DNA of 64,000 nucleotides from sequence record NC_019929.1. The stretch is one strand, 5' to 3'. A model generated the notes under the pieces. The model saw only the letters and a list, made by a program, of their open reading frames with translations, ran no database searches and had not been told where the DNA came from. Of the stretch, positions 41,568 to 64,000 are shown in pieces; position 1 is the stretch's first letter, and each line of letters starts with the position of its first letter. Made by a program: the position numbers and the translations under genes.

Positions 41568-41635
41568 CCCCTTTTAATATGCTGGCAGGGGGTCATAGAC
41601 GTGACCTCAACAATCCCTTTAAACGAGTTAACGCG

Positions 41636-42433: not shown

Positions 42434-42443
42434 GGGGGTCTGA

Positions 42444-43277: not shown

Positions 43278-43286
43278 GGATAGACG

Positions 43287-44141: not shown

Positions 44142-44161
44142 TCCTGCTAAAGGAAGTTAGA

Positions 44162-45058: not shown

Positions 45059-45065
45059 TGGCACG

Positions 45066-45108
45066 CTAGGGGGAGGCTATCCTCCTCCTAGCACTGCTTT
45101 CTTTTTTC
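45066..45108 (+). terminator. Intrinsic terminator
   Basis: CTAGGGGGAGG-CTAT-CCTCCTCCTAG then T-rich run. Confidence 0.7.
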
Positions 45109-45126
45109 TGTGCCGAGGAGGCTGCT

Positions 45127-45963: not shown

Positions 45964-45974
45964 GAATAAAACGA

Positions 45975-46862: not shown

Positions 46863-46865
46863 TGT

Positions 46866-47711
46866 ATGGGACTCAACTACAGTAAGCCTTCTGACTTGCT
46901 GGTCTTCGATCTGTTAAACCGGGACAACCCCGGTTTACCGATTCCGGTGGATGCGAATAACGTCATCATCGAGAAGATTACGCAAGTGACGCCAGGCCCG
47001 GCCAATAACAACCGCAACACCCAGGCACGGTTACGTGGGGTACAGGGAATGGGGTTCCGCGATTCCCTGACCTTGTACTACGACCGTATCAGTTTGGCAC
47101 GGCTTATCCCTTGGTGGAGCTACGGTACAACTACACGTACCGCGTGCGGTATTACCAACTTCACAGCAGCGAACCTGCACGAACTCCTGCCATCCATTCT
47201 GGATACGTACGGTATTAACCTGCAACCCAAAGATGTGACCAATCAAAACTTTAGTGGTGTAGGCCAACCGAACTATAACTTCACCTACGCTTGTAATGCG
47301 TTGGCGACTTCGCCTGCGTATTTCAGCGGTTTCACCGGTTACCTGATGCGTGGTCTGCCGGTGCTGGATACGTCGATTACGATTGACACCTTGAACGTCA
47401 TGAAGCACCCGATTGGCATTGACACCAATCAGATGTGTGTGGACTTGATGACCTGGGGTATCGATTTCACGGCGTACAAGAACCTGCTGACGGTCACGTC
47501 GGGCGGTCTGCCAAACTGGGCAGGTCTACGTAACCTGTTGGACAGCCTGGGTGTGCCGAACTACGCTGCACCGATGAGTTCCAACACGGTGCAAGACGTC
47601 GCCACCACGGGGAACCAGTGGGCGAACAAAGACTACGACCGCGTGGTGATTCAAACCGGTATCGATGAGACCGGAGCGAAGGGTGTAGCCTACTATCACT
47701 ACAACAACTAA
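46866..47711 (+). CDS. Virion structural paralogue, family I, copy 7
   Basis: VFDLLNRDN, RNTQARL.G..G.GF, YYDRISL, GVAYYHYNN. Confidence 0.75.
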   Translation: MGLNYSKPSDLLVFDLLNRDNPGLPIPVDANNVIIEKITQVTPGPANNNRNTQARLRGVQGMGFRDSLTLYYDRISLARLIPWWSYGTTTRTACGITNFTAANLHELLPSILDTYGINLQPKDVTNQNFSGVGQPNYNFTYACNALATSPAYFSGFTGYLMRGLPVLDTSITIDTLNVMKHPIGIDTNQMCVDLMTWGIDFTAYKNLLTVTSGGLPNWAGLRNLLDSLGVPNYAAPMSSNTVQDVATTGNQWANKDYDRVVIQTGIDETGAKGVAYYHYNN

Positions 47712-47714
47712 ACC

Positions 47715-47741
47715 AAGGGCCTGCGGGCCCTTTCTTTTTTG
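47715..47741 (+). terminator. Intrinsic terminator
   Basis: AAGGGCC-TGCG-GGCCCTT plus T-tract. Confidence 0.8.
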
Positions 47742-47765
47742 TCGTAGGTGGGCTTAGGAGTCACT

Positions 47766-49184
47766 ATGCAATTCTATTCCAGTGCTGCGTTACAACTGAT
47801 ATACGACCAGGTGAACCGAGACAACCCGGATTTACCGGTAAAGCTTACCCAGGACGTCGCGGCACTCAAGAGTGGGCCGACGGCTAACTCTGCCAATGGG
47901 CGCAATACCCGTGCGGTATTTGTTGCCTATCCCGGTAAAGGGTACCGTGGTGAAATCACACTCTATTACGACCGTGTTAACTTAGGACAAATCTTTACCA
48001 CGACACTCCGCCCGCTTATCAGCCTGCCTACGACAGTGAAGACGTTAGCAGATGCGTTGCCGTATTTGAACGACTTGCTCGGGCTCAGTCTGACCGTTGA
48101 GGATTTACAATCCCCCACGATGGCCCTGGCTCCGGATACCACCGTTAAGAATACCCAGGCGGCGATTGTCTCCACATCACCAGCGTTTCAGGGTGGGGTG
48201 AATTTCTCGTACCAGGCAGAAGGGCTTGGCTATTACCCGAATTCAGGCCCAGGGCCAAAGACGCTCCGCGCGGGCAATACCTTGATGGGGTATTTCGGCA
48301 AGGTGGACGCGTCTGAACTGTATACGCACGCAGAGCTGTATAACCTGACACTGAAAGGTACACCGGCGACGCTGTATGCAGGAACCGAAGGGTGGTACAA
48401 GTTCTTTTATCAAGGCGGGATTATTTATCTACCGGTAACGCCACTCGCGTATAACGTTAACTGGTCTATCATCTATAACGCGGGGATAGCGTACGGTATC
48501 GAGGGTGTCGGCGCATACCCAACCGTCACACCGGTCAACCAGTCGAAGATTCTGACGAAGTCACTGCCTGAGGGCAAGTTCTATCTGCGTCCACGTTTAC
48601 CGACAGCCAGTGTGAAGGACCCGATGACCGCAACCACCGGCACACTGCCAATTGCAGAGTACGTCGGCAGTATCCTCGAGTTAATGTTGAAAGTGCGAGA
48701 CGGGACGTGGGAATCTAACACCGAAGGTCGGTGGAATGACTGGGCAGTGTTCCTGAACAGCATCGCCGGGACAACCGGTAGTTTTAAACTGGTGGTACCG
48801 CTGTCAAAGAACGGTACCAACGTCGTCAAAACCAATACCGCTACCGCTTGGTACTGGTGGCCGGTGTTAGAGTTGGTGGATACCAATACCACGTTATTGA
48901 AACTGGAAGACCTGACCGGAAAACTGGAAACCTCCTTTACCCCGATTGTGGCCAGCCGTGAACAGAAGTTCGCGTTAGCGCCTGCGGTGTTCAGTGGGCC
49001 GAAGACCACGTTGTTCCAGCCGGTTGTCACGACGCCAGAGAATAGCTTGGCTATTGCTCCACCGATTCCGCTGTTACCGAAGACTGTTGATTTCCGTCCG
49101 GTCGTTGCAACGGGCAGTCAGGTAGATGCACCAACCAAAATCAATCTTTCCTCCCTCAATGGCGAATTGAGCGGGTTTAATTAG
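47766..49184 (+). CDS. Triplet module 1, gene A: anchor domain + domain Y + Pro-rich spacer + NGELxGF tail
   Basis: 472 aa; YYDRVNL, SGPGPK..GN..GYFG, WWPVLEL, NLSSLNGELSGFN. Confidence 0.8.
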   Translation: MQFYSSAALQLIYDQVNRDNPDLPVKLTQDVAALKSGPTANSANGRNTRAVFVAYPGKGYRGEITLYYDRVNLGQIFTTTLRPLISLPTTVKTLADALPYLNDLLGLSLTVEDLQSPTMALAPDTTVKNTQAAIVSTSPAFQGGVNFSYQAEGLGYYPNSGPGPKTLRAGNTLMGYFGKVDASELYTHAELYNLTLKGTPATLYAGTEGWYKFFYQGGIIYLPVTPLAYNVNWSIIYNAGIAYGIEGVGAYPTVTPVNQSKILTKSLPEGKFYLRPRLPTASVKDPMTATTGTLPIAEYVGSILELMLKVRDGTWESNTEGRWNDWAVFLNSIAGTTGSFKLVVPLSKNGTNVVKTNTATAWYWWPVLELVDTNTTLLKLEDLTGKLETSFTPIVASREQKFALAPAVFSGPKTTLFQPVVTTPENSLAIAPPIPLLPKTVDFRPVVATGSQVDAPTKINLSSLNGELSGFN

Positions 49185-49196
49185 AGGTAAGACGCC

Positions 49197-50186
49197 ATGG
49201 CATTTATATTGCGCTGGACGAACCCAAACGCAATGAGCACGGTGATTAACATTTACCGTGACACCAAAGACATCCTCACCAGTGCCTTGCCTGCACCGAT
49301 TGCCACGTTAAGTAATGGCGAAACCGAATGGCGCGACACTACCGCACTGGGCGGGAAAACCTACTACTACCTGATGACCGTTACCGCTAACGGTAAAACC
49401 GTCGCTGGCCCTTCCACCCCGTATACCGTCGCGGTGAAACGCGGTATTGGTCCGAGTACCTTTATCCACGGGGACGACAAGCTGGGCTTTATGGGGGTGG
49501 TGCCGTACGAAGAACGTTTCGACGTTAACCAACTTCCTGCAACCTTCCTGTCCATGTTCCCAAACGCGTTCACCGATCGTCCTGTGTTGTTGAAGTTCAG
49601 CTACTACGGGAAGATTATTTACGTCCCGGAATTCTCTCCCTCTATTGGGTTTGCCAGTTGGGCAGCACTTTACACCAACGGGTTAATCTACGGACGTGAT
49701 GACAATGGCCCGGATGGGGGTTGGGGAACACTGACACCTACGAAGCAGGATGCCAAAGTTGTCCATAAAGGTGACATTTACCGGATGCGCGTACCACGGG
49801 GTATCGTGGGGCAGAACACACCAGAGGTATTAGCCTTTAATAACGATTTCCAGTTGAAAGACCATGACGCGGTTGACCTTGGTAACAACGAGTTCAACGA
49901 CTTGATGTACGCCATGGTACTGGACTTCCCAGTAAAGCAGCGTGCCATTAATGCCCACGTATACAGCTCAACGTATCTCGGTGCGGGTGGTGTAGTTAGC
50001 GCTAACCCGAATTTGAACGGTGGTACGGTGTGTATGGAGCACGACAGTGCAAGTGAGCGAGTGTTACATCGCGGACATTATATTACCGCAACGAACCAAT
50101 CGCAGCTCAGTCTAATGCAGCGTATCAACTACGTGACTCCGCAGCAGGCTGGCCGTTATCTTCCCATCTTTGAACTGGTAGAATAG
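49197..50186 (+). CDS. Triplet module 1, gene B: FN3-like domain + domain Y
   Basis: LRWTNPN..IYR..YYYL (FN3-like W/Y pattern), GIGP..HGD..GFMG, YLPIFEL. Confidence 0.8.
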   Translation: MAFILRWTNPNAMSTVINIYRDTKDILTSALPAPIATLSNGETEWRDTTALGGKTYYYLMTVTANGKTVAGPSTPYTVAVKRGIGPSTFIHGDDKLGFMGVVPYEERFDVNQLPATFLSMFPNAFTDRPVLLKFSYYGKIIYVPEFSPSIGFASWAALYTNGLIYGRDDNGPDGGWGTLTPTKQDAKVVHKGDIYRMRVPRGIVGQNTPEVLAFNNDFQLKDHDAVDLGNNEFNDLMYAMVLDFPVKQRAINAHVYSSTYLGAGGVVSANPNLNGGTVCMEHDSASERVLHRGHYITATNQSQLSLMQRINYVTPQQAGRYLPIFELVE

Positions 50187-50194
50187 GAGCAGTT

Positions 50195-51124
50195 ATGACC
50201 ATTCGTTTAAGCTGGGTTTCACAGGCCAGCAAAAACCTGACTGCTATCGAAATCTATCGTAAAGTTGGGTATGCAGCCACACTCGACGTGAATGCTCCTG
50301 GGACGCCGTATAAGACACTTTCTCCAACAGCCACAGAGTTTATCGAGAATGTGTCTGACGTGACGGAGAAGACCATCTACAGCTACTGGGTAGCAGGTGT
50401 GAAAGATACTGAACGTTTGTTCGGCGCACGGATCGTGCAAGGGTTCTTTTTGGATACTGGGCCAGGCCCACAAACCATTCTCCGTGGAGATTGGTACTGT
50501 GGTTACTTTGGACCGGTTTCTGCTGCGGACTTCTTTACGACCGCTGAAATAAAATCCCTGCTGCCTACAACGCAGGCAGCGATGTTCAGCAACGAACCAG
50601 GAACATGGCACAAGTTTATCTACCTGGGTAGGATTGTGTTCATACCGGCTTCGCAACATACCCAAGCCATTTTTTCTAACGCATACACCCGTGGAATGGC
50701 TTACGGTACCGATGACAACGGTACTATCGTCCCCACAGGCCAAACGGCAACGAAACAAGATGCCCGTATCGCGAAGAATGGCCGCACGTACCGTATTCGT
50801 TTACCTCGAGCTGATGCATACGACACTAAACTCGATGTTACCAACGGTGAGTGGTTCTCGACCATGGGTCGAATGTTTAACAACGCCAACGATTACTCGA
50901 AGGTGGTGGATGCGAATGGGGTAGGGCGTGGAAAATTTGGTGGGTTGGCATTGCTGGGCAATACCGCCAACCAAACCGATCCTGGTGCACAATGTTTAAT
51001 GCCGATGTATAGCGCCGGGACCGTGTTCTTTGCTTACGGTTACCGACCAGATTCGTGGACCACCACCTCATCGCTGAGTACGAACATCGGTATGAGTTTT
51101 GTGTTTGAATTAATCCTCCCGTAA
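50195..51124 (+). CDS. Triplet module 1, gene C: FN3-like domain + domain Y
   Basis: LSWV..IEIYR..YSYWV, TGPGP..RGDW..GYFG, FVFELILP. Confidence 0.8.
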   Translation: MTIRLSWVSQASKNLTAIEIYRKVGYAATLDVNAPGTPYKTLSPTATEFIENVSDVTEKTIYSYWVAGVKDTERLFGARIVQGFFLDTGPGPQTILRGDWYCGYFGPVSAADFFTTAEIKSLLPTTQAAMFSNEPGTWHKFIYLGRIVFIPASQHTQAIFSNAYTRGMAYGTDDNGTIVPTGQTATKQDARIAKNGRTYRIRLPRADAYDTKLDVTNGEWFSTMGRMFNNANDYSKVVDANGVGRGKFGGLALLGNTANQTDPGAQCLMPMYSAGTVFFAYGYRPDSWTTTSSLSTNIGMSFVFELILP

Positions 51125-51136
51125 TGGAGAACCACC

Positions 51137-52537
51137 ATGGGGTTTTACAGTGATACGTCGTTGGCACTGTTGTGTCAACAGATTCTCCGTGATAACCCCG
51201 GATTACCTTACCCGCTGACGAAAGACAATGTGCTTATCTTAAGCGGGCCTTTAACTTCCGGTTTAGGGACGAGTGGGCGTAACAGCCGCATTACCTTAAA
51301 CGGGAAGTTAGGGTCGGGTTTTTCTGGGCGTAAGGAGTTCTTTTACGATCGCCTGAAAATGGAATCCATTTATACCAGCCTGCTATCGACGCTGGTACTG
51401 ACGATGCCAAATGGCGTAGCGACCAATGCAGACTTGCTCCCCACTATCAACGATGCGTTGGGATTAGGGTTAGCGTCAACAGACTTAGCTGCCCCCAGTA
51501 CCACGTTAGGGTTAGGCCGTACACCAACCACTGCAACGCTGGCATTGGCCACTAACTGTCCGTGTTTTACTGGCACCCTCACCGTGCAGTGGCAACGCGG
51601 CAGTACCGCGATTTATCCCGATTCGGGCCCTGGCAGTAAAGTGATGTTGATGGGTGACTTGAACGAAGGTTACTTCGGGATGGTGACACAACAGGAACTG
51701 GCAAAAGGGGTGGATGTCTATGCTGCATTTGCTGAGGGGAAATCCTTAGGCACAGCAGGTGGGGTCGATACCGCAGATATGTTCTGGCTGAAGTTTGCGT
51801 TAGACGGCAAGATTTGTTATTTCCCGTCACGCAACATCGGTGCAAACATCACCTGGAATACCCTGGCTAATAACGGGGCAGCCCGCGGAGATGCCAAATA
51901 CCCGATAACCTTCGAAGCAGGTGATGGCAGTACCGTCTTTGCACAACTTCGCCTACCCAACATCAGCACCACCGAAGTTGTTAATCCGAGTCGTGGCGAT
52001 CCTACGTCCGACCCAGTGCGGTTGTTCAACAAAGTCCACAAACAGACATACGGCACCGGTGTCTGGGACGAACTCACCACCATTAACATGGCTGAGGTGT
52101 TCTGGTGGTTAAACCGATATGCGGCATCCAGTGGTAACTCGGCTGTTATCAGTCAGTTTAACATCGCCTCTGTTAACGCCAATGCCATTGTCAATACACA
52201 CAACTGGCGACCCATGCTGGTGTTGGTGGATGGGGAATTGGTACTGGTTCCTCTTCGGAATGTGCAGGGTGAACGCTATTCGGTGTTATCCGCGCCGGGA
52301 CTAACCTACGATCGTACTCCTGACCCGAAACAACTTACGCGTGTGCGGGATGTGAATGGTACGCTGGATAACCCGGTTAGGAAGCCTTGGTTGAACCCAG
52401 TGGGCAGTGCGCCATTAACGGCAGTGCATAACCTCGCCATTGTTCGCGGGTTAAAGCCTATCCATCCGCAAGTAAGTGTGACCATCAACACCAAGATTAA
52501 TCTGGCCACGGCCAACGGTGAATTAACCGGTTTCTAA
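51137..52537 (+). CDS. Triplet module 2, gene A
   Basis: 466 aa; FYDRLKM, SGPGSK..GD..GYFG, WRPMLVL, NLATANGELTGF. Confidence 0.8.
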   Translation: MGFYSDTSLALLCQQILRDNPGLPYPLTKDNVLILSGPLTSGLGTSGRNSRITLNGKLGSGFSGRKEFFYDRLKMESIYTSLLSTLVLTMPNGVATNADLLPTINDALGLGLASTDLAAPSTTLGLGRTPTTATLALATNCPCFTGTLTVQWQRGSTAIYPDSGPGSKVMLMGDLNEGYFGMVTQQELAKGVDVYAAFAEGKSLGTAGGVDTADMFWLKFALDGKICYFPSRNIGANITWNTLANNGAARGDAKYPITFEAGDGSTVFAQLRLPNISTTEVVNPSRGDPTSDPVRLFNKVHKQTYGTGVWDELTTINMAEVFWWLNRYAASSGNSAVISQFNIASVNANAIVNTHNWRPMLVLVDGELVLVPLRNVQGERYSVLSAPGLTYDRTPDPKQLTRVRDVNGTLDNPVRKPWLNPVGSAPLTAVHNLAIVRGLKPIHPQVSVTINTKINLATANGELTGF

Positions 52538-52549
52538 AAGGGCAAGTAT

Positions 52550-53587
52550 ATGTCTTTAAAACTCTCGTGGAACAACCCCAACGTTGTTCCTACCCGTGTC
52601 CGGATTTATCGGAAAGACACGGATTTCGATTCCAGCACGTTGCCCGCACCGTTAGTGGAACTGACGAACGGTGAAACCACCTGGATTGACCCGACCGCCG
52701 TTGATGGTAACAGTTACTATTACGTTCTCGGGTCAAAGACCGACACGGATGAGGTCTTCACTGCCAGCCAAAAGATTCTGGTGGCAGATAACCGGGGCGT
52801 CGGGTCGAGCACCATTCTGCACGGTGATGCATCGCTGGGTTACATGGACTCGATTCTGTCTGTGGATTTTGTTAACTCGTCAACCATTCTGGCAGCTGCC
52901 CTTAATGCGTCCGGTTTACCGGTTGCGCTGGTACAGCCGACATGGCACAAGTTCATTCGCAACAACAAAATCATCTATGTTCCTGACCAGCAATTCGGGA
53001 CGGCCTCTTTCCCGAATCTGTACCGTGCCGGGTTTGTCTACGGTACGGACTCTGTGGGGCCAGAAGGTTACCCAACAGCTGGTCTGGCAGCACCCGTAAA
53101 CCAGTTACGGATTATCGAGTTCAAAGGCCAGAAGTACAAAATCCGCCTGATGCGGGGCTGGAGTGACGGGGTGATTACTGACGTTAACAACTGGGCCAGC
53201 ACCGGTCAAAGCAACATGGATTTGGTGCCGGAGGCGCAGAACAACGAGTACAGTGACCTTATCTACTCACTGGCAAAATTCGTACCGTTAAAACAACGTA
53301 CGCCGAACTGGCTTAATCTGTCGGTTGACCCGTGGCTGGGCGCACCTTTGTCATCTTACGACAGTGCCACCATCAACAGCTGGCGTGCCACGTTCCGTGT
53401 TCTGTGTCAAGAACGGCGGGCAAACGGGAACATTTTTACGCGCAGTATGCGTGAGTGTACGCTGAACCAAAACCAGGGTAGCCCGAACTCGAAAGCGAAC
53501 TTGACGTACGTGTTTTTGGGCGATGTTAACCAGGCCACTATTTGGATTCCGGTACTGGAACTCGTTGAACAAACCGCCACACTGTAA
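52550..53587 (+). CDS. Triplet module 2, gene B
   Basis: LSWNNPN, RGVG..HGD, WHKF, WIPVLEL. Confidence 0.8.
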   Translation: MSLKLSWNNPNVVPTRVRIYRKDTDFDSSTLPAPLVELTNGETTWIDPTAVDGNSYYYVLGSKTDTDEVFTASQKILVADNRGVGSSTILHGDASLGYMDSILSVDFVNSSTILAAALNASGLPVALVQPTWHKFIRNNKIIYVPDQQFGTASFPNLYRAGFVYGTDSVGPEGYPTAGLAAPVNQLRIIEFKGQKYKIRLMRGWSDGVITDVNNWASTGQSNMDLVPEAQNNEYSDLIYSLAKFVPLKQRTPNWLNLSVDPWLGAPLSSYDSATINSWRATFRVLCQERRANGNIFTRSMRECTLNQNQGSPNSKANLTYVFLGDVNQATIWIPVLELVEQTATL

Positions 53588-53598
53588 GGGAGGCTGGC

Positions 53599-54483
53599 AT
53601 GGGTATTAAACTCAAGTGGGACGATCAGTCGGCCCAGAATCTGGACGGGATTGAAATCTACCGTTCAGCCACAAAGATTGACAGCAACAATCCCGGTGCC
53701 CCACTGGCCACGATTGCCGGTAGCGCAACAGCGTACGAAGACAACAGTGTTCTGAACAAGTCACTGTATTACTATCGTATCCTGGCGAAGAAAGGCACGG
53801 ACAAAGCCTGGTCAGAAAATATCCTGGCCGGGTATTTCGCAGAAACGGGGCCGGGTAACCCAACGCCATTACGTGGCGATTGGAATGCTGGGCTGATGGA
53901 CACTGTGCTGCCGCAGGATCTTATCACCAATGCGGCACTACGGGCGAAGGTGCCATCGTTGGCAGCACTCAGTGGCGCTGCGGAACCTGGTGCTTGGTAT
54001 AAGTTCTGTTATAAAGGGACCGTGTTCTTCTGCCCCAGCGCATCCATCGTTACCGCGAGTTGGTCACAGTTATATTCGGCTGGTTTGGTCTACGGGACAG
54101 ACGATGTGGGTGTGTCACCTTCCGGGCCAACAGGGACTGTCAAACAACGGACAGTGGTGAACATCAACGGGCTGAACTATATTCTGCGGTTACCACGCAT
54201 GTCGACCTTGCCGTTAAACCAGTACGTGGTTAATCAGGCTGACACGCTAGGCAGTGAGTGGCGCGACACCGTTGCGCGTTTAGTTGCAGACGGGGTAGAC
54301 ACTTCACCGGGAAGCCGGACTCGCCTGTTTGATTTGGGTTCCTTCGCAAATGCGTTGGGGCCACACCTCAATACCAACGTTAACGTGGCAGGGGTGACCT
54401 CTACAAAACCTGAGACATTGGTTGCTTACAACAGCGGTGCTTCGGTTGCGCAAACTTTGGTGTTAGAACTCATCATGCCTTAA
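53599..54483 (+). CDS. Triplet module 2, gene C
   Basis: LKWDDQ, TGPG..RGDW, WYKF, LVLELIMP. Confidence 0.8.
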   Translation: MGIKLKWDDQSAQNLDGIEIYRSATKIDSNNPGAPLATIAGSATAYEDNSVLNKSLYYYRILAKKGTDKAWSENILAGYFAETGPGNPTPLRGDWNAGLMDTVLPQDLITNAALRAKVPSLAALSGAAEPGAWYKFCYKGTVFFCPSASIVTASWSQLYSAGLVYGTDDVGVSPSGPTGTVKQRTVVNINGLNYILRLPRMSTLPLNQYVVNQADTLGSEWRDTVARLVADGVDTSPGSRTRLFDLGSFANALGPHLNTNVNVAGVTSTKPETLVAYNSGASVAQTLVLELIMP

Positions 54484-54493
54484 TGGAGGGGTT

Positions 54494-56017
54494 ATGGGGC
54501 TTTATAACAAGACGTCCCTCGAACTGTTGTGCCAACAAATCGAACGGGACAATCCCGCAACCGCGGGTCAACTTGACGCGGCGTCGATACTGGTGCTCAG
54601 CGGGCCCTTAACCACTGGTCTTGGAACAAGCGGGCGCAATGCCCGCATTATCCTGAACGGTCGTTTAGGAAATGGTTTTATCGGAAAGAAGGAATTCTTT
54701 TACGACCGTTTAAACATTGGACAAATGTTCAAAGGCATCACAGTGGTGTTTCAGGCAGAGGGGTCGTCTAAGACGTACGCCGATTTACTGCCCGCGCTGA
54801 ATGCGCAATATGGATTGGGGTTAGCGGCGGCAGACATTGCCAACGCCACCACCAAACTCCCTTATGGCTACGCGCCAACACAGCTCACGTTAACCATCGC
54901 TGCAACGTCCCTGGCGTATACGGGTACGTTGTCAGTGACCTGGTCACGGAAACCGGTGGGTGTCTTCCCGGAATCTGGCCCAGGTTCGAAGGTCATGCTT
55001 ATCGGGGACATGAATGAGGGCTATTTCGGGGTTGTGACCGAAGCCGAGTTGTTCAGCCCAGTGGAAGTCCTCAGTCAACTGAACGAAGGGCGTACTGAGC
55101 CTTACGGGACGTTACAGGCCATGCCAACCAGTCGGTTTTGGTATAAGTTCGCACGCGATGGGAAAATCTTCTATCTCGCGAACTACAACCAAATCAGTAT
55201 TCGCTGGCAGGAGTTGTACCGCTTGGGGGGTATCTACGAAACGGATACGCCAGACAATAAACAGTTCCCGCCCGATGGGGTGCTGTCTCGTCAAAAGAGC
55301 GTGTTGAAGAAGAAGGAAAATGGGCGCGATTGGTATCTCTCTCCAACCGCACCGAAACTCGCGGGGAGTGACCCGTGGGAGTACGCCGGAGTAAACCAAA
55401 CCCCTGACCCAGGTGGGGACGTTGCGAGACTGTTTGCAAAGGTTGTACCATCGGGTGGTTTCGCCACCGGGGAATGGGATGGTCAAATCATCAATGCTGA
55501 CGGGTTCTGGATGTCCACGACATCACAAACCTCGCCTGCAAATGCATACGGCAGTAGCATGATCGGTGCCAACCAGGGTCAGTACAATAAAACCAACTTT
55601 GTTGGGGGCTGGCGACCGTTCCTGGAACTGGTTGATGTAACCAAAATCGCATTAGGCTTGAACCCGTTCAGTGGGGTACCGGAAGGGGTGTTAAGAAAAC
55701 CTCTGGTCTCCATCAGTCCAGAAGTGACGGATGTGTTGTTAACCCTGAGTGATGTGAAGTGGGAACAAAACGGGGCATTGCGCATTCCGTTAGTGTCGCA
55801 GACATTGCAACCGTTACAAATGACCACGTATTTTGGCTGGACGCGGTTACTTCGTCCGGCTCTCGTGACGGTAAAGCATGAGCCGATACGTAACGTCAAC
55901 CAGGTAGGGTGGACTCGCCCTCTCCGGCGACCTGTCGCGGCACTGACCGTGGACTACAAGGAATCAACAGCCTTTAACTTAGCCAACGCCAACGGTGAGC
56001 TAAACGGCTTTAAATAA
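54494..56017 (+). CDS. Triplet module 3, gene A
   Basis: 507 aa; FYDRLNI, SGPGSK..GD..GYFG, GWRPFLEL, NLANANGELNGFK. Confidence 0.8.
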   Translation: MGLYNKTSLELLCQQIERDNPATAGQLDAASILVLSGPLTTGLGTSGRNARIILNGRLGNGFIGKKEFFYDRLNIGQMFKGITVVFQAEGSSKTYADLLPALNAQYGLGLAAADIANATTKLPYGYAPTQLTLTIAATSLAYTGTLSVTWSRKPVGVFPESGPGSKVMLIGDMNEGYFGVVTEAELFSPVEVLSQLNEGRTEPYGTLQAMPTSRFWYKFARDGKIFYLANYNQISIRWQELYRLGGIYETDTPDNKQFPPDGVLSRQKSVLKKKENGRDWYLSPTAPKLAGSDPWEYAGVNQTPDPGGDVARLFAKVVPSGGFATGEWDGQIINADGFWMSTTSQTSPANAYGSSMIGANQGQYNKTNFVGGWRPFLELVDVTKIALGLNPFSGVPEGVLRKPLVSISPEVTDVLLTLSDVKWEQNGALRIPLVSQTLQPLQMTTYFGWTRLLRPALVTVKHEPIRNVNQVGWTRPLRRPVAALTVDYKESTAFNLANANGELNGFK

Positions 56018-56028
56018 CAGGTGGAAAC

Positions 56029-57012
56029 ATGGCACTTAAACTTCTCTGGAAGAATCCCAATACCGTTGCAACCACGATTGACATTTACCGCGGTGACACG
56101 TCGAACGTTAGCTTAACCACGCCACTGAAAACCGTGGATGGTGCGGAGACGTCGTGGATTGACACCACGGCATTGTTTGGGAAAACGTACTATTACGTCT
56201 GGGCAGTAAACTCGGCAGTTGACCGGGTCGTGTCTCGTCCGCAGAAAATCGAAGTCTCTGACCGTCGTGGGCCAGGGTCGAACTTGTTGCGTCACGGTGA
56301 TGAGAACTACGGTTACTACGGTGCGGTGTCAGCGGCGGACTTCGTTAACAGCACCACGCTGTATAACGCAGCGAAAAACACCTCCGGTTTACCGACTACC
56401 GTTATCTACCCGACGTGGCACAAATTTGCCCGTAAAGGGAAAGTCGTCTTTGTGCCCAACCAGTGGTTCGGGGATGTTACCTGGCAGAGTCTGTATGACG
56501 CGGGTCTGGTCTACGGGACAGATGATGTTGGCGGAGCCAATCCGGCAGGCACCGTTAACCAGTTGACCACTTTTGATTTCAACGGTGAAACGTTCCTGAT
56601 TCGTTTGATGAAAGGAATGCCAGAGGGTCTCGTGTGGGACGGGTCAAACTTTAACCCGAATACCTTCGCCCCGATGAAAGACGTCTACGCCGAATACGAG
56701 GACTTCCTCTACCCGTTGTGTAAAGACGCGCCGTTACGCCAAAGAATGGTCTCGGTTGATACACTCGACGGCAGGGCCTGGATACCAGGGGCAGCCTACA
56801 ACAACCGTGTCAACTATGGGGTGATTTGTCAGGAAGCCCTGGCCAACGTGTTGGTACGTGGTACGCCGAACTACAACAACGACCCGTCAACACGCAGTTC
56901 CATGGAATCCACGATTGCCCGCAGTCGTACCGCCGGGACACCGTGGGTACCGGTTGTCGAATACGTGGGTCGTGTAGGTGAGACCTTTACCCTGCCGAAG
57001 ACGGCCAAGTAA
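56029..57012 (+). CDS. Triplet module 3, gene B
   Basis: LLWKNPN, RGPG..HGD, WHKF, WVPVVEY. Confidence 0.8.
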   Translation: MALKLLWKNPNTVATTIDIYRGDTSNVSLTTPLKTVDGAETSWIDTTALFGKTYYYVWAVNSAVDRVVSRPQKIEVSDRRGPGSNLLRHGDENYGYYGAVSAADFVNSTTLYNAAKNTSGLPTTVIYPTWHKFARKGKVVFVPNQWFGDVTWQSLYDAGLVYGTDDVGGANPAGTVNQLTTFDFNGETFLIRLMKGMPEGLVWDGSNFNPNTFAPMKDVYAEYEDFLYPLCKDAPLRQRMVSVDTLDGRAWIPGAAYNNRVNYGVICQEALANVLVRGTPNYNNDPSTRSSMESTIARSRTAGTPWVPVVEYVGRVGETFTLPKTAK

Positions 57013-57022
57013 GGAGTAGAAC

Positions 57023-57919
57023 GTGGGTATTAAAATTAACTGGGACGACCAGACTGACCAGGCACTGGATGCAGTAGAAGTGTATCGGAGCACCTCACCT
57101 ATTGATGAGAATGCACCTGGAACCCCTATTGCGACTTTACCGGGCACGGCACGAGAGTACGAAGACACCGGCGTGAAGAACGGTAACACGTACTACTACC
57201 GTGTGGCAGTGGTGAAAGGCGCTAATCGCTCTTTCGGTACTCAACAGACCGCAGGGTACTACTCTAACCTCGGGCCCGGTCCGAAGAAGATTCTGCGGGG
57301 CGATTGGATAGCTGGGTATTTCGGTGAGATGCTGAATGCAGACTGGGTGTTGCCGTTGGATGTGGCGAACAAAATTACCGCAGCCCTGAAATCCACCGTT
57401 GGGATTAACTACATCACCTCGTCTGACCGTTGGCACAAGTTTATCTATAAAGGTAAAGTGTTGTTCGTGCCATCTACCCGACTGATGTACTCGACGTATG
57501 CAAACGCGTACAACGCCGGGTTCTTGTTCGGTGAAGACGGCGTTGGCCAACTGCCGACGGGGCCTGCGGGGAACGTTAATCAGAAAACGGTTATCGAGAT
57601 TGGTGGGTATCAGTTCCTGGTACGCCCTATCCGCATGTCGGACAAACCAACTTCGCAGTACCTGACCGCACAAGCGGACTTTGTGGAAAGCGAATGGAAG
57701 AAGACGTTTGCCCGTTTGCGTATCGATGCGAACGCACAAACCGACCCAACCATCTTTGCCCGGTTCAGCGACTACACCACCATCGACTGGTGCGGCGGCC
57801 CACACCAGGCAAGCGCAACGACGTGTGCAACTGCGGTTAACGGCAACCCGGAGAATCTCGGTACCACGGCGAACACCAGTAACATCAACTGGTGTATTGC
57901 ATTGGAATTGATTCCGTAA
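57023..57919 (+). CDS. Triplet module 3, gene C
   Basis: INWDDQ, GPGP..RGDW..GYFG, WCIALELIP; GTG start after AAGGAG. Confidence 0.8.
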   Translation: MGIKINWDDQTDQALDAVEVYRSTSPIDENAPGTPIATLPGTAREYEDTGVKNGNTYYYRVAVVKGANRSFGTQQTAGYYSNLGPGPKKILRGDWIAGYFGEMLNADWVLPLDVANKITAALKSTVGINYITSSDRWHKFIYKGKVLFVPSTRLMYSTYANAYNAGFLFGEDGVGQLPTGPAGNVNQKTVIEIGGYQFLVRPIRMSDKPTSQYLTAQADFVESEWKKTFARLRIDANAQTDPTIFARFSDYTTIDWCGGPHQASATTCATAVNGNPENLGTTANTSNINWCIALELIP

Positions 57920-59489: not shown

Positions 59490-59540
59490 TAAAGAAAGAA
59501 TTACCCACTCCTTTGCGGGAGTGGGTAATCTCTTTTATTT
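59490..59540. terminator. Bidirectional intrinsic terminator
   Basis: A-rich flank, TTACCCACTCC-TTTGCG-GGAGTGGGTAA, T-rich flank, between convergent genes. Confidence 0.85.
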
Positions 59541-60050
59541 CGCGTCGACTTTGTCTGTCGTTTCGCTTGGAGACGGGGTAATTAACACGGGTACCGATGG
59601 CTGGTCGAGGGGCCCGATGATACAACGGAAGAAGGTCATGCCGGAACCGCTGCCCGTCAGTGGGCTGACAGTTGAATAATCAAACGACGGTGAGCCTGTC
59701 AGTAATCCGTTGGTACGGTAAAAGCGTTTCCCCGACTTGGTATCGATGTTCCCGTCAATCTTACCGGTGGCATCTTTATACAACTGCGGTGCTTCTAACT
59801 TACCACCGTCCCAGGTCGCTACCCAATTCGCCCCTACATCCATAACCGTAACGGCACGAGGGAAAACAGCGATGCTGGAAGCAACGGGTCGGTAATCAAC
59901 AAATTCCGTCTCCACACCCGTACAGGTGTAGATGACCATATCGTGATTAGTGACAGGGACAGTGGAGAACTGTCCTTTATCATCTGCGTTCATGGCACAA
60001 CCTGAAAGCAACATGATAAACGCGAGCACGCACAACAAGTGCTTGGTCAT
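59535..60050 (-). CDS. Lipoprotein
   Basis: MTKHLLCVLAFIMLLSG/C lipobox; AGGA SD. Confidence 0.8.
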   Translation of the reverse strand: MTKHLLCVLAFIMLLSGCAMNADDKGQFSTVPVTNHDMVIYTCTGVETEFVDYRPVASSIAVFPRAVTVMDVGANWVATWDGGKLEAPQLYKDATGKIDGNIDTKSGKRFYRTNGLLTGSPSFDYSTVSPLTGSGSGMTFFRCIIGPLDQPSVPVLITPSPSETTDKVDAK

Positions 60051-60184: not shown

Positions 60185-60709
60185 ATGGCAAAAACAGCAC
60201 GAGCGCAATTTATTGCGATGTTCAACGCGGATAACACTGGTCTGGCGCAAGCACTGGTCGAAGCAGATGTTACCTTTGGCGCAGTGGCCGAATATGACCC
60301 TGCCGATGAGGCCGATACCCGCAACTCCAAAGTGACGCTGACTGCCGTTGCAGAAAGCACGCACTTTACCGGGGAAAAGGAATTCCACTTCACCCGTCTG
60401 GCTGCAAACATCGTTGGTGCGAAAGCAGTTACCGATGACCAGGCCGACTGGGACACCGATGCCGAAGTCCTGGCATTCCTGAATGCTGACGTTATCTCCG
60501 CTGGTAAAGCGGATGATGCGTTTGCACTCAGCGAGCTGGACATTGTTCGTACCGATGGTGCGGATGATGCGAAAGTGATTACCGTCACTATCAAAGCCGG
60601 TCACCTGAAGTTCCTGCCAGGCGATGTGGCAGTCTACACCATTACGCAAGAGATCACTAAAACTGACCTCTCTACCACAAATGGTGAGCTCAACGGTTTC
60701 ACAGCTTAA
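60185..60709 (+). CDS. Short virion paralogue: anchor domain + NGELNGF tail (probably abundant)
   Basis: FIAMFNADN, RNSKV, FHFTRL, DLSTTNGELNGF; strong codon bias. Confidence 0.8.
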   Translation: MAKTARAQFIAMFNADNTGLAQALVEADVTFGAVAEYDPADEADTRNSKVTLTAVAESTHFTGEKEFHFTRLAANIVGAKAVTDDQADWDTDAEVLAFLNADVISAGKADDAFALSELDIVRTDGADDAKVITVTIKAGHLKFLPGDVAVYTITQEITKTDLSTTNGELNGFTA

Positions 60710-60791: not shown

Positions 60792-61298
60792 ATGGCTAAG
60801 TCGTTGCAAGAACTGTTTGTCGATATGATCAACGAAGTCAATCCAGATTTAGGGTTAACGCTCAGTGACGTCACATTCGGTGCGCCTTCCGAATACACCC
60901 CTGCGGATTCAGGGGACACCCGTAATACCGTGTTGACCTTAGTGGCAAAAGATGACAGCCCGAATTTCAAGGGCAGTAAAGATTACCACTTCTTCCGCTT
61001 CAATTTCACTAACCCTGGCGGTGTCACTACCCCAACATTAACCACCGGGGATTTGATTGGGAACTGGCAGGACGATGCAAAGGTCTTGATGGTCATGAAC
61101 ATGATGCTGCCGAATTACAAACTGACAGCAGAAGAGATTGGCATCGAACGCGTGACCGTGGATGCCACCACGTTAGATGTACGCATCACCATCGACCCGA
61201 ATCATTTAAAGTGGCACGGGACATTTGTGACACGCGTAATCGACGAAGGGAAAACCAACCTGCAATGGTTGAATCCCGAGTTGAGCGGGTTCAAATAA
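60792..61298 (+). CDS. Short virion paralogue: anchor domain + NPELSGF tail
   Basis: FVDMINEVN, DVTFGAP, RNTV, YHFFRF, NLQWLNPELSGFK. Confidence 0.8.
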   Translation: MAKSLQELFVDMINEVNPDLGLTLSDVTFGAPSEYTPADSGDTRNTVLTLVAKDDSPNFKGSKDYHFFRFNFTNPGGVTTPTLTTGDLIGNWQDDAKVLMVMNMMLPNYKLTAEEIGIERVTVDATTLDVRITIDPNHLKWHGTFVTRVIDEGKTNLQWLNPELSGFK

Positions 61299-61348
61299 AA
61301 AGAAAGCGACCTACTACCTTTACGGGTAGTAGGTCTGCTTATTTTATT
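61297..61348. terminator. Bidirectional intrinsic terminator
   Basis: A-tract, GACCTACTACC-TTTACG-GGTAGTAGGTC, T-rich tail. Confidence 0.85.
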
Positions 61349-61351
61349 CGC

Positions 61352-62020
61352 TTACAACAAGCCTTCTTCGGTCGCCACGGATTTGATACCCGTGAAGTCC
61401 TGTGCTTCAGCCAGTGTACGAATCGTACGCTTGAGTTCCGTCATCGCTGCGTGCAGCTGCGCATCACGTTCCACGATGGCTGCCAGCACCGCTTTACACG
61501 CTGCAACGTCGAACGGATGTTCTTCACTGCCTAAGCGGTTGTTCTGCGCATCCAGCCAATACCCCGGTGAGGTATCGGATTGAACGTACGAGGCCAGCGA
61601 CGCACGAGACTTCTCATCGGCTTGCAGCAGGATGCCCTGGAATTCGATGTTCTCGTGACGCTGAGTTTCGTAGCGTTCCGCGATACGGGTATAGATAGGC
61701 TGAATCTCTTGGTAGAGATAGTTTACCGTCGAGGTCAAGCCTTTGCGGATTTCGTCCAGCGGCAGCTCTAACACGGTTTCGATAAACTCTTTCGCCTTAC
61801 GCAGCGTGAACTGGGCTTCCGGTTCACTGAGGTCGTACTCACGCAGCTTTTTGACAGCCGCTTTATCCGATACCCCGTTCAACAGATGATAATGCAGCAG
61901 GGTACAGTACCCCTGCTTGGTCTCATCGTCTTTCGCCAGAATGGTCATGTAATTACCGTGGCGGTCAATCGGGTTACCGAATTCGAAGTAACGGGCCTTT
62001 ATCTCGTCATTACTAAGCAT
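61352..62020 (-). CDS. DUF4376-like domain protein (tail-fibre-assembly-associated)
   Basis: FQGILLQADEKSRASL...YWLDAQN...F...C..VL.AI..R...LHA in the C-terminal half. Confidence 0.6.
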   Translation of the reverse strand: MLSNDEIKARYFEFGNPIDRHGNYMTILAKDDETKQGYCTLLHYHLLNGVSDKAAVKKLREYDLSEPEAQFTLRKAKEFIETVLELPLDEIRKGLTSTVNYLYQEIQPIYTRIAERYETQRHENIEFQGILLQADEKSRASLASYVQSDTSPGYWLDAQNNRLGSEEHPFDVAACKAVLAAIVERDAQLHAAMTELKRTIRTLAEAQDFTGIKSVATEEGLL

Positions 62021-62589
62021 TCAGATTCTCCTGCTAACCCGAGGTCCATCAGCAGGCCGAAGTCAACCATCTGGAAGTGTTCGGATAATTCCTCACCCCA
62101 GATAAATTTCATCTTCTCTGCTAAGTCCCCGTTCTGTTCCTGGAAGATAAAGATTTGGTGCATTTCCTCACCAAACGAGTCGAACTGATGGTTAGAACGC
62201 AGCGCGCGTACGCGCACACCGATCAAATCCGCAGCTTCCGGATTCTCCGGGTCGGCCCAGTTTAATGCCAGGCCAATCAGGTTATCGGTATCCAGGTTCT
62301 GCGTAGAGCGACGCAGGATTTCGATTTTGTGGCGCGGGAATTCCGCAACACGCTGTTCGAAGCCCGGATTACGGATGGCCACCTGCTCCACAGAGTTGTG
62401 TGTTTTCTCAACCCCGTCCAGCGGCAGAATGACGTTCAGTCCGAAGCGCACACACAGACGACGAATCTCATCAGTAAACGTGTCCGGTTCCACAATCGCG
62501 TGGATGTTGTACATGCCGTGCTTTTGCATAAACGCGGCAACAAGGTGAAGATTACGCTTCGTAAAATTGTGTATCAGCAACGACTTCAT
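61999..62589 (-). CDS. Hypothetical protein in radical SAM operon
   Basis: 196 aa, overlaps both neighbours (22 and 38 nt). Confidence 0.7.
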   Translation of the reverse strand: MKSLLIHNFTKRNLHLVAAFMQKHGMYNIHAIVEPDTFTDEIRRLCVRFGLNVILPLDGVEKTHNSVEQVAIRNPGFEQRVAEFPRHKIEILRRSTQNLDTDNLIGLALNWADPENPEAADLIGVRVRALRSNHQFDSFGEEMHQIFIFQEQNGDLAEKMKFIWGEELSEHFQMVDFGLLMDLGLAGESECLVMTR

Positions 62590-63895
62590 TCGCTGGTGCT
62601 CCTAATTGGTTTTTCTTCTCGGCTGCTAATTTGCGATCGCGCACACAAGACACACAGTAGCACTGGGTCTTATCGTTCAGATCGGTATAACGGGTAGTAC
62701 CGGTTTTCTGGTAGAAGTATTCTGCTACCAACAGTTTGGCGGTAGTCCAGCCACACTGACGACGCTCAGCGTGATACGCTTTACGGTCTTCCATTTCCCC
62801 GTCACCGTTCTCGTATGATGCCGCGGCACAACTACCACACGCGTGCTTCATCGGACAACCCAGGCACGTTTCTGGATAGTTGGTGTACTGCGTTTGAATT
62901 TCGTTCAACAGCTTATTGTCATCGATATTGACAATCTCACGGCCACGCAGTTCTGCGATAGCCTGACGTGTCGTTACCGTGGACATAAAGCGGTTACAGC
63001 CGTAAATCTTGCGGTCGAAGCCCAGGCAGGTCATGTGGGTTACGGTACCGCAGAACGGACGCACACGCTCCGGGTTCAGACGCGTTGCTTCGTCGTCCAG
63101 GAGCTTCTGACGCCAATCCGGGTCCCAGGTTGCCATGAAGTCCAGGCCATCCGGGAAGATGTGGGTCAGGCGGTTACGTGGGTCTTTCTCAAACCCTTTG
63201 TCGAACCAGTAGTCAATCACGTCCATCATCTGCAACGCAATCGACATTGCCATGGTGCGCGGCAGAATGTCTTCGTACGTGACGTTACCGGAAATGGTAC
63301 CGCCGCCGGTGACGTCCATCAGGTGCTTCATGGACTCGGCGTATTTCGGCAGGGTCTCAGAGGTAAAGGTGGCTTTGATACCCAGTTCCAGGATACCGAC
63401 CGATTTCAGGTAGTTGTAACCACGCATCGCTTTTTCGTACGACCCTTCACGGGTAGTCGTAAAGATACGATAACGGTCATGCACTTCCGGCAGACCATCG
63501 ATAGACACGCCGATGGACAGTTTGTCACGCCAGCGTTCGATAATCTCGCGGTTCAGCGGCTTGTCGAATAACGTGCCGTTCGTCGAGATGGAGAAGATAA
63601 CGTCACGGTTATCACGCTTCGCCAGTTCTTCGGCCGTTTCAAATACGGCTTTCAGAATCTTCGGCTGCATCATGGGTTCACCACCGATGATATCGATGAT
63701 AACTTCCACGTTCTTCAAATGACGGTCACGGTCGAAACACGCATGAATGAAGTCCACTGCATCATCGGCTTTATTGTTACGCGGGTATTTACGCTCGTAG
63801 CAATATTCACAGTCGAGGTTACAGGAGAGGTTGGTCACCACCTGATAGGTTTTGGTGATTTTGGGCTCTTGGGCCGGTGCTTTGGTATCACGCAT
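62552..63895 (-). CDS. Radical SAM enzyme with SPASM-type domain (peptide/protein maturase class)
   Basis: CNLDCEYC (CxxxCxxC), IGGEP, STNGTL, SIDG..EVHD.YR, CG...GCNRF, CLGCPMKHACGSC, C. Confidence 0.9.
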   Translation of the reverse strand: MRDTKAPAQEPKITKTYQVVTNLSCNLDCEYCYERKYPRNNKADDAVDFIHACFDRDRHLKNVEVIIDIIGGEPMMQPKILKAVFETAEELAKRDNRDVIFSISTNGTLFDKPLNREIIERWRDKLSIGVSIDGLPEVHDRYRIFTTTREGSYEKAMRGYNYLKSVGILELGIKATFTSETLPKYAESMKHLMDVTGGGTISGNVTYEDILPRTMAMSIALQMMDVIDYWFDKGFEKDPRNRLTHIFPDGLDFMATWDPDWRQKLLDDEATRLNPERVRPFCGTVTHMTCLGFDRKIYGCNRFMSTVTTRQAIAELRGREIVNIDDNKLLNEIQTQYTNYPETCLGCPMKHACGSCAAASYENGDGEMEDRKAYHAERRQCGWTTAKLLVAEYFYQKTGTTRYTDLNDKTQCYCVSCVRDRKLAAEKKNQLGAPANEVVADTQFYEA

Positions 63896-64000
63896 TGCGA
63901 TTTAACCCCGCTTGTATTACACGATTCATGTACTGGTAAGCGTCATAGCCAATGACTTCGGCCAGACGGTTACAGCCCGAGTTCAACACATCTATGGCAT
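63888..64000 (-). CDS. 3' end of upstream gene of radical SAM operon (truncated by window)
   Basis: Open frame ...AIDVLNSGCNRLAEVIGYDAYQYMNRVIQAGLNRNA-stop, overlapping the rSAM start by 8 nt. Confidence 0.6.
   Translation of the reverse strand, partial: AIDVLNSGCNRLAEVIGYDAYQYMNRVIQAGLNRNA

Follow-up and report, generated by a model that had tools for sequence, protein, structure and literature searches.

A radical SAM cassette with cysteine-repeat partners in Erwinia phage phiEaH2: a putative maturation system for tail-fibre tips

Results

Genes at the locus

The window analysed here, the whole stretch of 64,000 nucleotides, is identical with bases 1-64000 of the genome of Erwinia phage phiEaH2 (NC_019929.1/JX316028), and record coordinates coincide with the window numbering. 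phiEaH2 is an SPN3US-like jumbo phage of the genus Erskinevirus with a genome of 243 kb. At the far end of the window lies a run of minus-strand genes centred on gp083, which encodes a radical S-adenosylmethionine (SAM) enzyme with a SPASM-type C-terminal region, and it is this enzyme, the genes that accompany it and its candidate substrates that we describe (Table 1). An initial annotation, made from the letters of the window, had distinguished four overlapping genes, and the list of open reading frames (ORFs) agrees with it: the three complete ORFs of gp081, gp082 and gp083 are followed by one that has its stop at 63888 and leaves the window, and neighbouring genes overlap by 22, 38 and 8 nt. 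The first of the four, which was there left as a gene of unknown function, is in fact a second radical SAM gene, gp084.

Positions past 64000 were read from bases 57000-77000 of the record (locus L001), where small ORFs were also listed. In the direction of transcription the gene order is pepA-pepB-pepC-gp085-gp084-gp083-gp082-gp081, eight genes of which the window holds the downstream half. The SPN3US counterparts of the genes that the cassette follows, gp089-gp091, are gp167-gp171, including gp168 and gp171, which have been classed as baseplate/fibre proteins through genetics and proteomics (PMC5105663). The arrangement of the cassette is kept in at least 59-62 related phage genomes and so is not a chance pattern.

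Table 1. Features of the cassette and its borders. Positions are those of the window; those past its edge are marked as record positions.
Feature	Position	Strand	Description
gp081	61352-62020	-	222 aa; DUF4376 at the C-terminal end (residues 115-206); final gene of the cassette; putative tail-fibre chaperone
gp082	61999-62589	-	196 aa; without family name; phrog_7988
gp083	62552-63895	-	447 aa; radical SAM/SPASM; putative maturase of Cys-X3-repeat proteins
Codons of the gp083 radical SAM cluster motif CNLDCEYC (residues 25-32)	63800-63823	-	Read from the sequence
gp083 SPASM-type auxiliary-cluster region (residues 282-381)	62753-63052	-	Cys 282, 290, 300, 344, 347, 353, 356, 381
gp083 extra C-terminal CYCVSC (residues 412-417)	62645-62662	-	Read from the sequence
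gp084, 3' end	63888-64000	-	Last 37 codons and stop; gene of 301 aa, continues to record 64793
gp085	record 64810-65697	-	295 aa; outside the window
pepC	record 65708-65914	-	68 aa; outside the window
pepB	record 65959-66357	-	132 aa; outside the window
pepA	record 66369-66752	-	127 aa; outside the window
Fibre/baseplate genes gp089-gp091	upstream of pepA, beyond the window	-	Directly followed by the cassette
Terminator-like hairpin	61308-61335	both	Stem of 11-12 bp; between the convergent gp080 (+) and gp081 (-); consensus scan only

gp083 resembles peptide-modifying SPASM enzymes

gp083 passes the Pfam radical SAM model PF04055 with 54.9 bits against a cut-off of 29.5, and its own PHROG is phrog_1802 (E 1e-125), with the QueE-like phrog_2076 reached only at E 4e-4. 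Amongst the NCBIfam models the best match is to the thioether maturase PapB (NF047865; E 1e-38, 133.4 bits against a cut-off of 340), and TIGR04115, the enzyme of the CXXX-repeat system, aligns with residues 16-375 over nearly the whole model (E 6.8e-35, 121.2 bits against a cut-off of 350). Further matches were to HxsB, the geopeptide maturase, SCIFF, CcpM, QhpD and anSME. The closest solved structure by sequence is that of the thioether-forming CteB (PDB 5wgg, E 9e-14), the alignment covering the radical SAM core. The comparison with TIGR04115 and other SPASM families that the initial annotation had proposed therefore came out on the side of peptide maturation, with PapB and TIGR04115 as the best matches and CteB the best in the PDB; by its sequence gp083 is to be grouped with the peptide maturases and not with the cofactor or nucleotide enzymes.

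In an alignment of 30 homologues reaching down to 24% identity, C25, C29 and C32 are at least 90% conserved, as is C381, and there is no variation at C282, C300, C344, C347, C353 and C356. This pattern is of the SPASM type, with the seven to eight Cys residues expected where two auxiliary [4Fe-4S] clusters are bound, which bears out the SPASM character that had been noted for the gene from the start. The full-length alignments of gp083 with models of SPASM maturases take in these residues. The extra CYCVSC noted at the same time is also present. Of the 20 jumbo-phage homologues shown, which go down to 49% identity, 19 keep it as a CxCxxC motif, the remaining one (P0073) having another Cys-rich tail at that place, and it is absent from a class of homologues of roughly 377 aa and from the bacterial relatives. 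The final residues of gp083 (window 62552-62600), which end in QFYEA, are met again at the C-terminal end of many homologues whose tails vary in other respects, and may represent a docking motif.

Three Cys-repeat proteins are encoded upstream

The initial annotation had seen no precursor of a peptide synthesised ribosomally and modified after translation (RiPP) in the window, and no ORF there has more than 3 CxxxC. It had placed the substrate just upstream, as a Cys-rich peptide or fibre segment, and had looked to Cx3C repeats beyond 64000. They are found 1.8-2.9 kb past the edge on the same strand, in three paralogous ORFs, pepA, pepB and pepC, which lie between the virion genes gp089-gp091 and gp085. 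In each an N-terminal part of roughly 50 aa leads into Cys-X3 repeats, with 21 Cys in pepA, 20 in pepB and 4 in pepC, and each start codon is preceded by a Shine-Dalgarno-like purine run. The N-terminal part is conserved, so that the layout is the leader and core, next to a modifying enzyme, by which RiPP clusters are recognised. Neither pepB (18.5 bits) nor pepA (13.1 bits) nor pepC (11.3 bits) reaches the 20-bit cut-off of TIGR04114, one of the two target families of the CXXX-repeat system; these are near-misses, and a near-threshold match was also found to the other, TIGR04117.

The proposed reading frame is kept in the phages Asesino, Caitlin, SPLA1a, SPN3US, Phobos and Wellington. The pepA cores of phiEaH2 and Asesino differ by 20 synonymous and 0 non-synonymous changes, and for the N-terminal part the ratio of non-synonymous to synonymous substitution rates (dN/dS) is 0.09. 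Strong purifying selection thus confirms the reading frame of the Cys-repeat genes. The public records differ from it. In RefSeq phiEaH2 pepC is correctly called as gp086, whereas gp087 and gp088 are wrong-frame calls over pepB and pepA (record 65939-66184 and 66436-66570; L001 8940-9185 and 9437-9571). In SPN3US neither pepA nor pepC is annotated, and pepB is overlain by gp166, a call in the wrong frame (JN641803 143409-143744; L010 6477-6812); read in the right frame, the three genes are at L010 6001-6393, 6404-6808 and 6824-7030. In a tblastn search with pepA its N-terminal part was matched in 59 phage records, all of them SPN3US-like and with Erwinia, Salmonella, Escherichia or Proteus as hosts, and most of these matches carry no annotated feature.

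The repeat cores are made up of 25% Cys, 29% Ser, 25% Gly and 9% Thr, with 1.2% Lys+Arg and 0% Asp+Glu. The distance from one Cys to the next is 4 residues in 83% of the intervals and 3 in 16%. Such a composition and such regular spacing of 3-4 residues would also suit a module that binds metal or an iron-sulfur cluster and is not cross-linked, with the radical SAM enzymes loading or maturing the metal site or carrying out another Cys chemistry, such as that giving formylglycine or a dehydro residue. The want of an acidic acceptor residue in the cores fits this too, as do the weaker match of gp083 to the anaerobic sulfatase maturase (4e-18) and matches of gp084 to metalloenzyme and tungsten-cofactor maturases. 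Nevertheless the strongest and longest matches of gp083 are to the thioether-forming maturases PapB, TIGR04115, SCIFF and CteB, a SPASM enzyme was found in 2026 to put thioether links on a Cys-rich protein (CrpC and CrpA; PMC13692751), and no metal chaperone is encoded in the cassette. We regard metal binding without cross-links as distinctly unlikely.

The enzyme and a Cys-repeat gene occur together

A scan of IMG/VR with the gp083 alignment gave 336 relatives, on genomes ranging from phages of roughly 30 kb to jumbo phages of 390 kb, and the best 79 loci (23-100% identity) were kept. Homologues at 49-100% identity are almost only on contigs of about 225-264 kb. A Cys-X3-repeat partner, counted as an ORF with 5 or more CxxxC on the strand of the radical SAM gene and no further than 3.5 kb from it, was found in 77 of the 79 loci, upstream in 69 and only downstream in 8; by comparison, the remaining 683 kb of flanking sequence held only 6 ORFs with at least 5 CxxxC. 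At L035 no ORF reaches the threshold of 5 CxxxC. At L006, a relative of 33% identity, no Cys-repeat ORF was seen and the radical SAM gene is 1.6 kb from the contig end. The Cys-repeat gene is downstream of the radical SAM gene in the distant viral loci L040-L043, L047, L054, L055 and L079. Those of L040-L043 and L047 have their repeats close to the N-terminus, the first at residues 23-32, and in L040 a non-Cys domain of about 110 aa comes after them, which reverses the layout of the jumbo phages; the repeats of L054, L055 and L079 begin near residue 80.

Relatives of the other cassette proteins were sought in the fetched loci with profile hidden Markov models (HMMs) built from alignments, and their distribution is nested. 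All 18 jumbo-phage loci have relatives of gp084, gp085, gp082 and the DUF4376 protein, loci in the 30-36% identity class usually have a gp085 relative and often a second radical SAM enzyme, and at the most distant loci the enzyme is accompanied by the Cys-repeat protein alone. gp085 relatives were found in 27 of 81 loci, all in the 30-100% identity class, and gp082 and DUF4376 relatives in the jumbo phages. A Logan phage contig (L005), which encodes P0081, 36% identical to gp083, has the order GpJ-like tail protein, a 258-aa protein ending in Cys-X3 repeats, a gp085 relative (E 3e-8), two radical SAM genes and P0081. Two genes downstream of this radical SAM trio (L005 10876-11418) there is a 180-aa protein with a thrombospondin type-1 match (TSP1_ADAMTS, E 5e-13). 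The pairing is also found in a bacterial metagenome-assembled genome (MAG), of Margulisbacteria, where an ORF of about 660 aa, 112 of them Cys, has a homologue of gp083 (29% identity) at a distance of 0.9 kb on its downstream side. This 112-Cys stretch of about 660 codons (L007 3868-5871) is free of stops and is split by the public gene calls.

Radical SAM genes of phages are often tied to nucleotide metabolism, the QueE-like phrog_2076 being an example, and gp084 has weak matches to the MoaA, viperin, NrdG and QueE models (1e-7 to 3e-10). It might be supposed from this that both enzymes act on nucleotides, DNA or a cofactor, in hypermodification or in a queuosine-type reaction, and that the Cys-rich ORFs are unrelated to them. 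However, gp083 fits its own family far better than the QueE-like PHROG, its top NCBIfam matches are nearly all to peptide or protein maturases, it has the SPASM Cys pattern, a Cys-X3-repeat ORF adjoins its relatives at almost every locus, and relatives of gp084 are also present in the nearest non-jumbo modules. This explanation is highly improbable, and for gp083 nucleotide or cofactor chemistry was rejected on the family matches, the Cys pattern and the Cys-repeat neighbour.

The Cys-repeat module is found at the ends of tail-fibre-like proteins

pepA matches phrog_6085, a PHROG of unknown function, over the whole profile (E 1.3e-48). This PHROG is matched too by the C-terminal ends of far longer proteins in the loci L030, L031, L032, L037, L038, L051 and L005. 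Several of these long proteins have N-terminal matches to tail-fibre PHROGs (L031, 1.8e-10; L037, 1.7e-9; L038, 1.4e-31; L051, weak), as has the protein of L034 (2e-40), which bears Cys-X3 repeats at its C-terminal end yet has no phrog_6085 match. Pfam scans of the fibre-embedded substrates were mostly empty and it was the PHROGs that gave the classification. The fibre-embedded repeats occur in loci whose gp083 relative belongs to the 30-36% identity class, and in them the position of the leader is taken by the fibre itself. When the junctions were aligned, from 40 residues before to 30 after the first Cys, there were columns common to the free-standing jumbo-phage proteins and the fibre-embedded modules; in phiEaH2 pepA the junction reads CGGTCSWSC. 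At L051 (7273-8520) the Cys-X3-repeat tail, adjoining a gp083 relative, is C-terminal to an SGNH/GDSL esterase domain (E 6e-26), an arrangement of domains which suggests that fibres are not alone in being able to bear the module and that enzymatic receptor-modifying proteins can do so too.

The initial annotation had already linked the cassette to tail fibres, by way of the DUF4376-like gene. That gene, gp081, does carry the domain (PF14301, 37 bits against a cut-off of 25) and belongs to phrog_8169; it has relatives in 62 SPN3US-like phage records and no PDB relative by sequence. In the Alteromonas phages V22 and A5, and only there, DUF4376 proteins have been shown by experiment to be required as tail-fibre chaperones (PMC7289586, PMC10579305), and together with the phrog_6085 modules that end tail-fibre-like proteins beside homologous radical SAM genes this upholds the link.

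The pep proteins could instead be precursors of free, RiPP-like products, that is of diffusible cross-linked peptides serving as bacteriocin, signal or metal chelator and released at lysis, and the link with the tail genes would then be one of position. Three paralogous precursors with a leader-plus-core layout, in a row beside radical SAM maturases, are what is seen in bacterial RiPP clusters, and the best family matches of gp083 are RiPP maturases. Distant pairs of enzyme and Cys-repeat protein without fibre domains, one of them in the bacterial MAG, are also as expected for such products, and metal-chelating modified Cys-rich peptides are known, the bufferins being an example (PMC12452194). 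On the other hand no leader peptidase, exporter or immunity gene could be recognised: the five cassette proteins other than the substrates gave no peptidase or transporter family match when scanned against Pfam and NCBIfam, though absence of a match is not proof, and gp081, gp082 and gp085 match no such family. Moreover, the nearest relatives outside the jumbo phages carry the same module as a covalent part of tail-fibre-like proteins, a tail-fibre-chaperone domain is encoded by the final gene of the cassette, and the cassette sits inside a block of tail/baseplate genes. A free product thus seems unlikely, though it is the alternative that we take most seriously.

The second radical SAM enzyme and the accessory proteins

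gp084 (record 63888-64793) passes PF04055 with 52.6 bits and has the motif CNLDCSFC. Its CX3CX2C and three further C-terminal Cys, the last of which is inside the window, are conserved in 14-15 of 15 homologues, and the three C-terminal residues suggest that it carries an auxiliary cluster. The family matches of gp084, given above, are weak and mixed, and matches to the PDB are marginal only (E about 1e-3).

For gp082 and gp085 no family was found in the Pfam and NCBIfam scans. gp085 is co-inherited with substrates bearing the C..C.W.C junction pattern. Its family model is confident, with a predicted local distance difference test (pLDDT) score of 87.7, and judging from this model it may represent a new fold. 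gp082 is rarer, only 25 relatives being detectable among 1.8 billion representatives. Its AlphaFold model (pLDDT 90.4) is a partial TIM barrel, and the protein lacks the CX3CX2C motif and has two Cys only. The best Foldseek match is to SuiB (5v1q; E 4e-4, prob 1.0), with the PFL-AE domain 3can (template modelling (TM) score 0.51/0.60), PqqE and SkfB also found. With low confidence, the model would allow gp082 to be a cluster-less pseudo-radical SAM protein or scaffold.

Transcription signals and neighbouring genes

Terminator-like hairpins flank the unit from pepA to gp081 on both sides, and the one at 61308-61335 is likely to mark the 3' end of the transcription unit of the cassette. A scan for sigma-70 promoters was at background, with 6 found against 4.3 expected. 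SPN3US-like phages use their own RNA polymerases. Judged by eye from the alignment, there seems to be a stem-loop between the stop of gp089 and the start of pepA (L001 9754-9819, equivalent to record 66753-66818), and one of different sequence at the same spot in L002, L003, L004, L008 and L009, which makes 6 of the 6 phages compared. Its role could be in attenuation or in stabilising the RNA; the consensus that RNAalifold gave for it is weak because the alignment is poor.

On the other side of the hairpin at 61308-61335, and converging there on the cassette, are two adjacent plus-strand paralogues (60185-60709 and 60792-61298) with DUF7941 (phrog_4862) and weaker matches to virion structural protein PHROGs. 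The protein gp078 (59535-60050, minus strand; 171 aa, phrog_9559) starts with a lipoprotein-type signal ending in LSGC, from which it may be a phage lipoprotein encoded between the endolysin/DUF1353 genes and the cassette. Further away, window positions 41579-57919 hold on the plus strand sixteen tandem paralogous genes for proteins of 277-507 aa, each with 4-12 paralogues at E < 1e-5 in the array; the last two are annotated as putative virion structural proteins.

Discussion

A proposal for the function of the cassette

It would seem probable that the region is part of an eight-gene late cassette for the maturation of cysteine-repeat fibre-tip modules and, by analogy with the enzymes that gp083 most resembles, the cassette probably installs thioether links. 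gp083, predicted to carry one radical SAM and two SPASM clusters, would recognise the conserved junction before the repeats and proceed from there through the repeats. At each step it would take a hydrogen from a carbon of a nearby Ser, Thr or Gly and bond that carbon to the Cys sulfur, to give a ladder of thioether bridges of the sactionine or ranthionine type. gp084 might add a second kind of link or handle a subset of the sites. gp085 would present the substrate, with the cluster-less, radical SAM-like gp082 as a scaffold, and the DUF4376 protein gp081 would be the chaperone for trimerisation or attachment, the part that its relatives play with tail fibres. All this would yield a fibre tip with covalent stiffening, or a filament associated with the fibre, resistant to proteases and to redox changes.

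A wider proposal, which we put forward tentatively as possible rather than probable, is that the tail fibres of phages are given covalent thioether ladders by radical SAM enzymes in their distal tips of Cys-X3 repeats, as a widespread and undescribed modification of the virion. In the SPN3US-like jumbo phages the module would be split into three free-standing proteins of 7-13 kDa, which in SPN3US, the model phage of the group, annotation and hence proteomics have missed.

A number of observations weigh against maturation of fibre tips by thioether formation. The score of gp083 is far under every NCBIfam curated cut-off and, as the thresholds are failed, the cassette is not filed as a member of the TIGR04115, TIGR04114 or PapB equivalogs. 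The Pfam SPASM model, PF13186, does not match gp083, for which only PF04055 and PF13353 were found at E <= 0.01, although PF13186 is present in some of its distant homologues. The chemistry of the cross-link is proposed by analogy only, and since the cores have no Asp or Glu the acceptor of PapB (CXXXD/E) and the motif proposed for CrpA (C-X-X-Q/D) are absent and these chemistries cannot apply as such. The Cys-repeat proteins of the most distant loci are without a recognisable fibre domain and one of the loci is bacterial, so that the pair of enzyme and substrate is not intrinsically tied to fibres. As to the accessory proteins, for the gp085 model the PDB and BFVD gave no structural neighbour apart from the gp085 orthologue, which leaves the protein without an assignable function, and the likeness of gp082 to radical SAM cores is modest (TM 0.4-0.5), ordinary TIM barrels scoring similarly.

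Finally, pepA, pepB and pepC are putative as virion components, and the study of the essential genes and proteome of SPN3US (PMC5105663) does not mention gp161-gp166 in the text or supplements examined. Its silence is weak evidence, because the genes are unannotated or misframed and the cores have so little Lys and Arg; the published SPN3US proteomics could not have seen pep proteins that are not in the annotation and are nearly free of tryptic sites.

Implications

Tail fibres decide which bacteria a phage recognises and have to survive proteases, pH and redox stress outside the cell. The known means by which fibres are stabilised are trimeric beta-structures, bound metal ions and chaperone-assisted folding. 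Enzymatic carbon-sulfur cross-linking by radical SAM enzymes would, if the proposal is true, be a new principle for virion proteins, and RiPP-type chemistry would be extended from small secreted peptides to viral structural proteins. The orphan family of CXXX-repeat radical SAM enzymes gains a tractable biological setting, together with abundant natural pairs of substrate and enzyme. The locus also exposes a systematic error of annotation, in which GC-rich Cys-repeat genes are misframed or missed in phiEaH2, SPN3US and most of the 59 relatives, and which would have hidden the Cys-repeat proteins from every proteomic study of the group.

Comparison with known systems

The CXXX-repeat radical SAM system, known from comparative genomics as the enzyme TIGR04115 with its targets TIGR04114 and TIGR04117, is like the phage cassette in placing a SPASM enzyme beside a long Cys-X3-repeat protein. 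The cassette differs from it in being viral, in having fibre-tip-related substrates with the C..C.W.C junction and in the additional second radical SAM enzyme, gp085, gp082 and DUF4376 protein. The literature that was searched, with most subscription journals outside it, contained neither a paper characterising TIGR04115 nor a description of the cassette, which does not prove that the latter is novel.

PapB, which modifies PapA to the ranthipeptide freyrasin, resembles gp083 in being a SPASM enzyme without an N-terminal RiPP recognition element (RRE) extension and acts repeatedly on Cys-X3 motifs. In CXXXD/E motifs it joins the Cys to the acidic residue, Asp or Glu (PMC10739248), whereas the phage cores are free of both residues and do not have the CXXXD/E substrate by which NF047865 is defined. 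CteB, the thioether maturase of the SCIFF peptide CteA, likewise has a SPASM-type C-terminal Cys pattern. However, the match of gp083 begins at CteB residue 103, so that the N-terminal peptide-binding extension of CteB is missing, and the SCIFF substrate is a short six-Cys peptide and not a 20-Cys repeat.

CrpC of Methanococcus voltae, also a SPASM radical SAM enzyme, installs thioether (ranthionine) links on the Cys-rich repeat protein CrpA (PMC13692751, 2026). Like the pep proteins, CrpA has a conserved N-terminal part, of about 47 residues, that is common to a paralogue. In contrast to the phage cassette that system is archaeal and cellular, the repeat unit of CrpA is 17 residues long with C-X-X-Q/D, and CrpA has no link to a virion.

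The DUF4376 chaperones V22 gp27 (195 aa, domain at 92-184) and A5 gp9 (239 aa, domain at 138-231) have the domain at the C-terminal end as does gp081, a likeness that rests on the domain and its layout. Both are encoded downstream of the fibre gene that they serve; gp081 instead follows the radical SAM cassette and the three mini-proteins. What is new in the phage cassette, compared with these systems, is the viral setting, the fibre-tip substrate, the extra partners and the splitting of the module into free-standing proteins in the jumbo phages.

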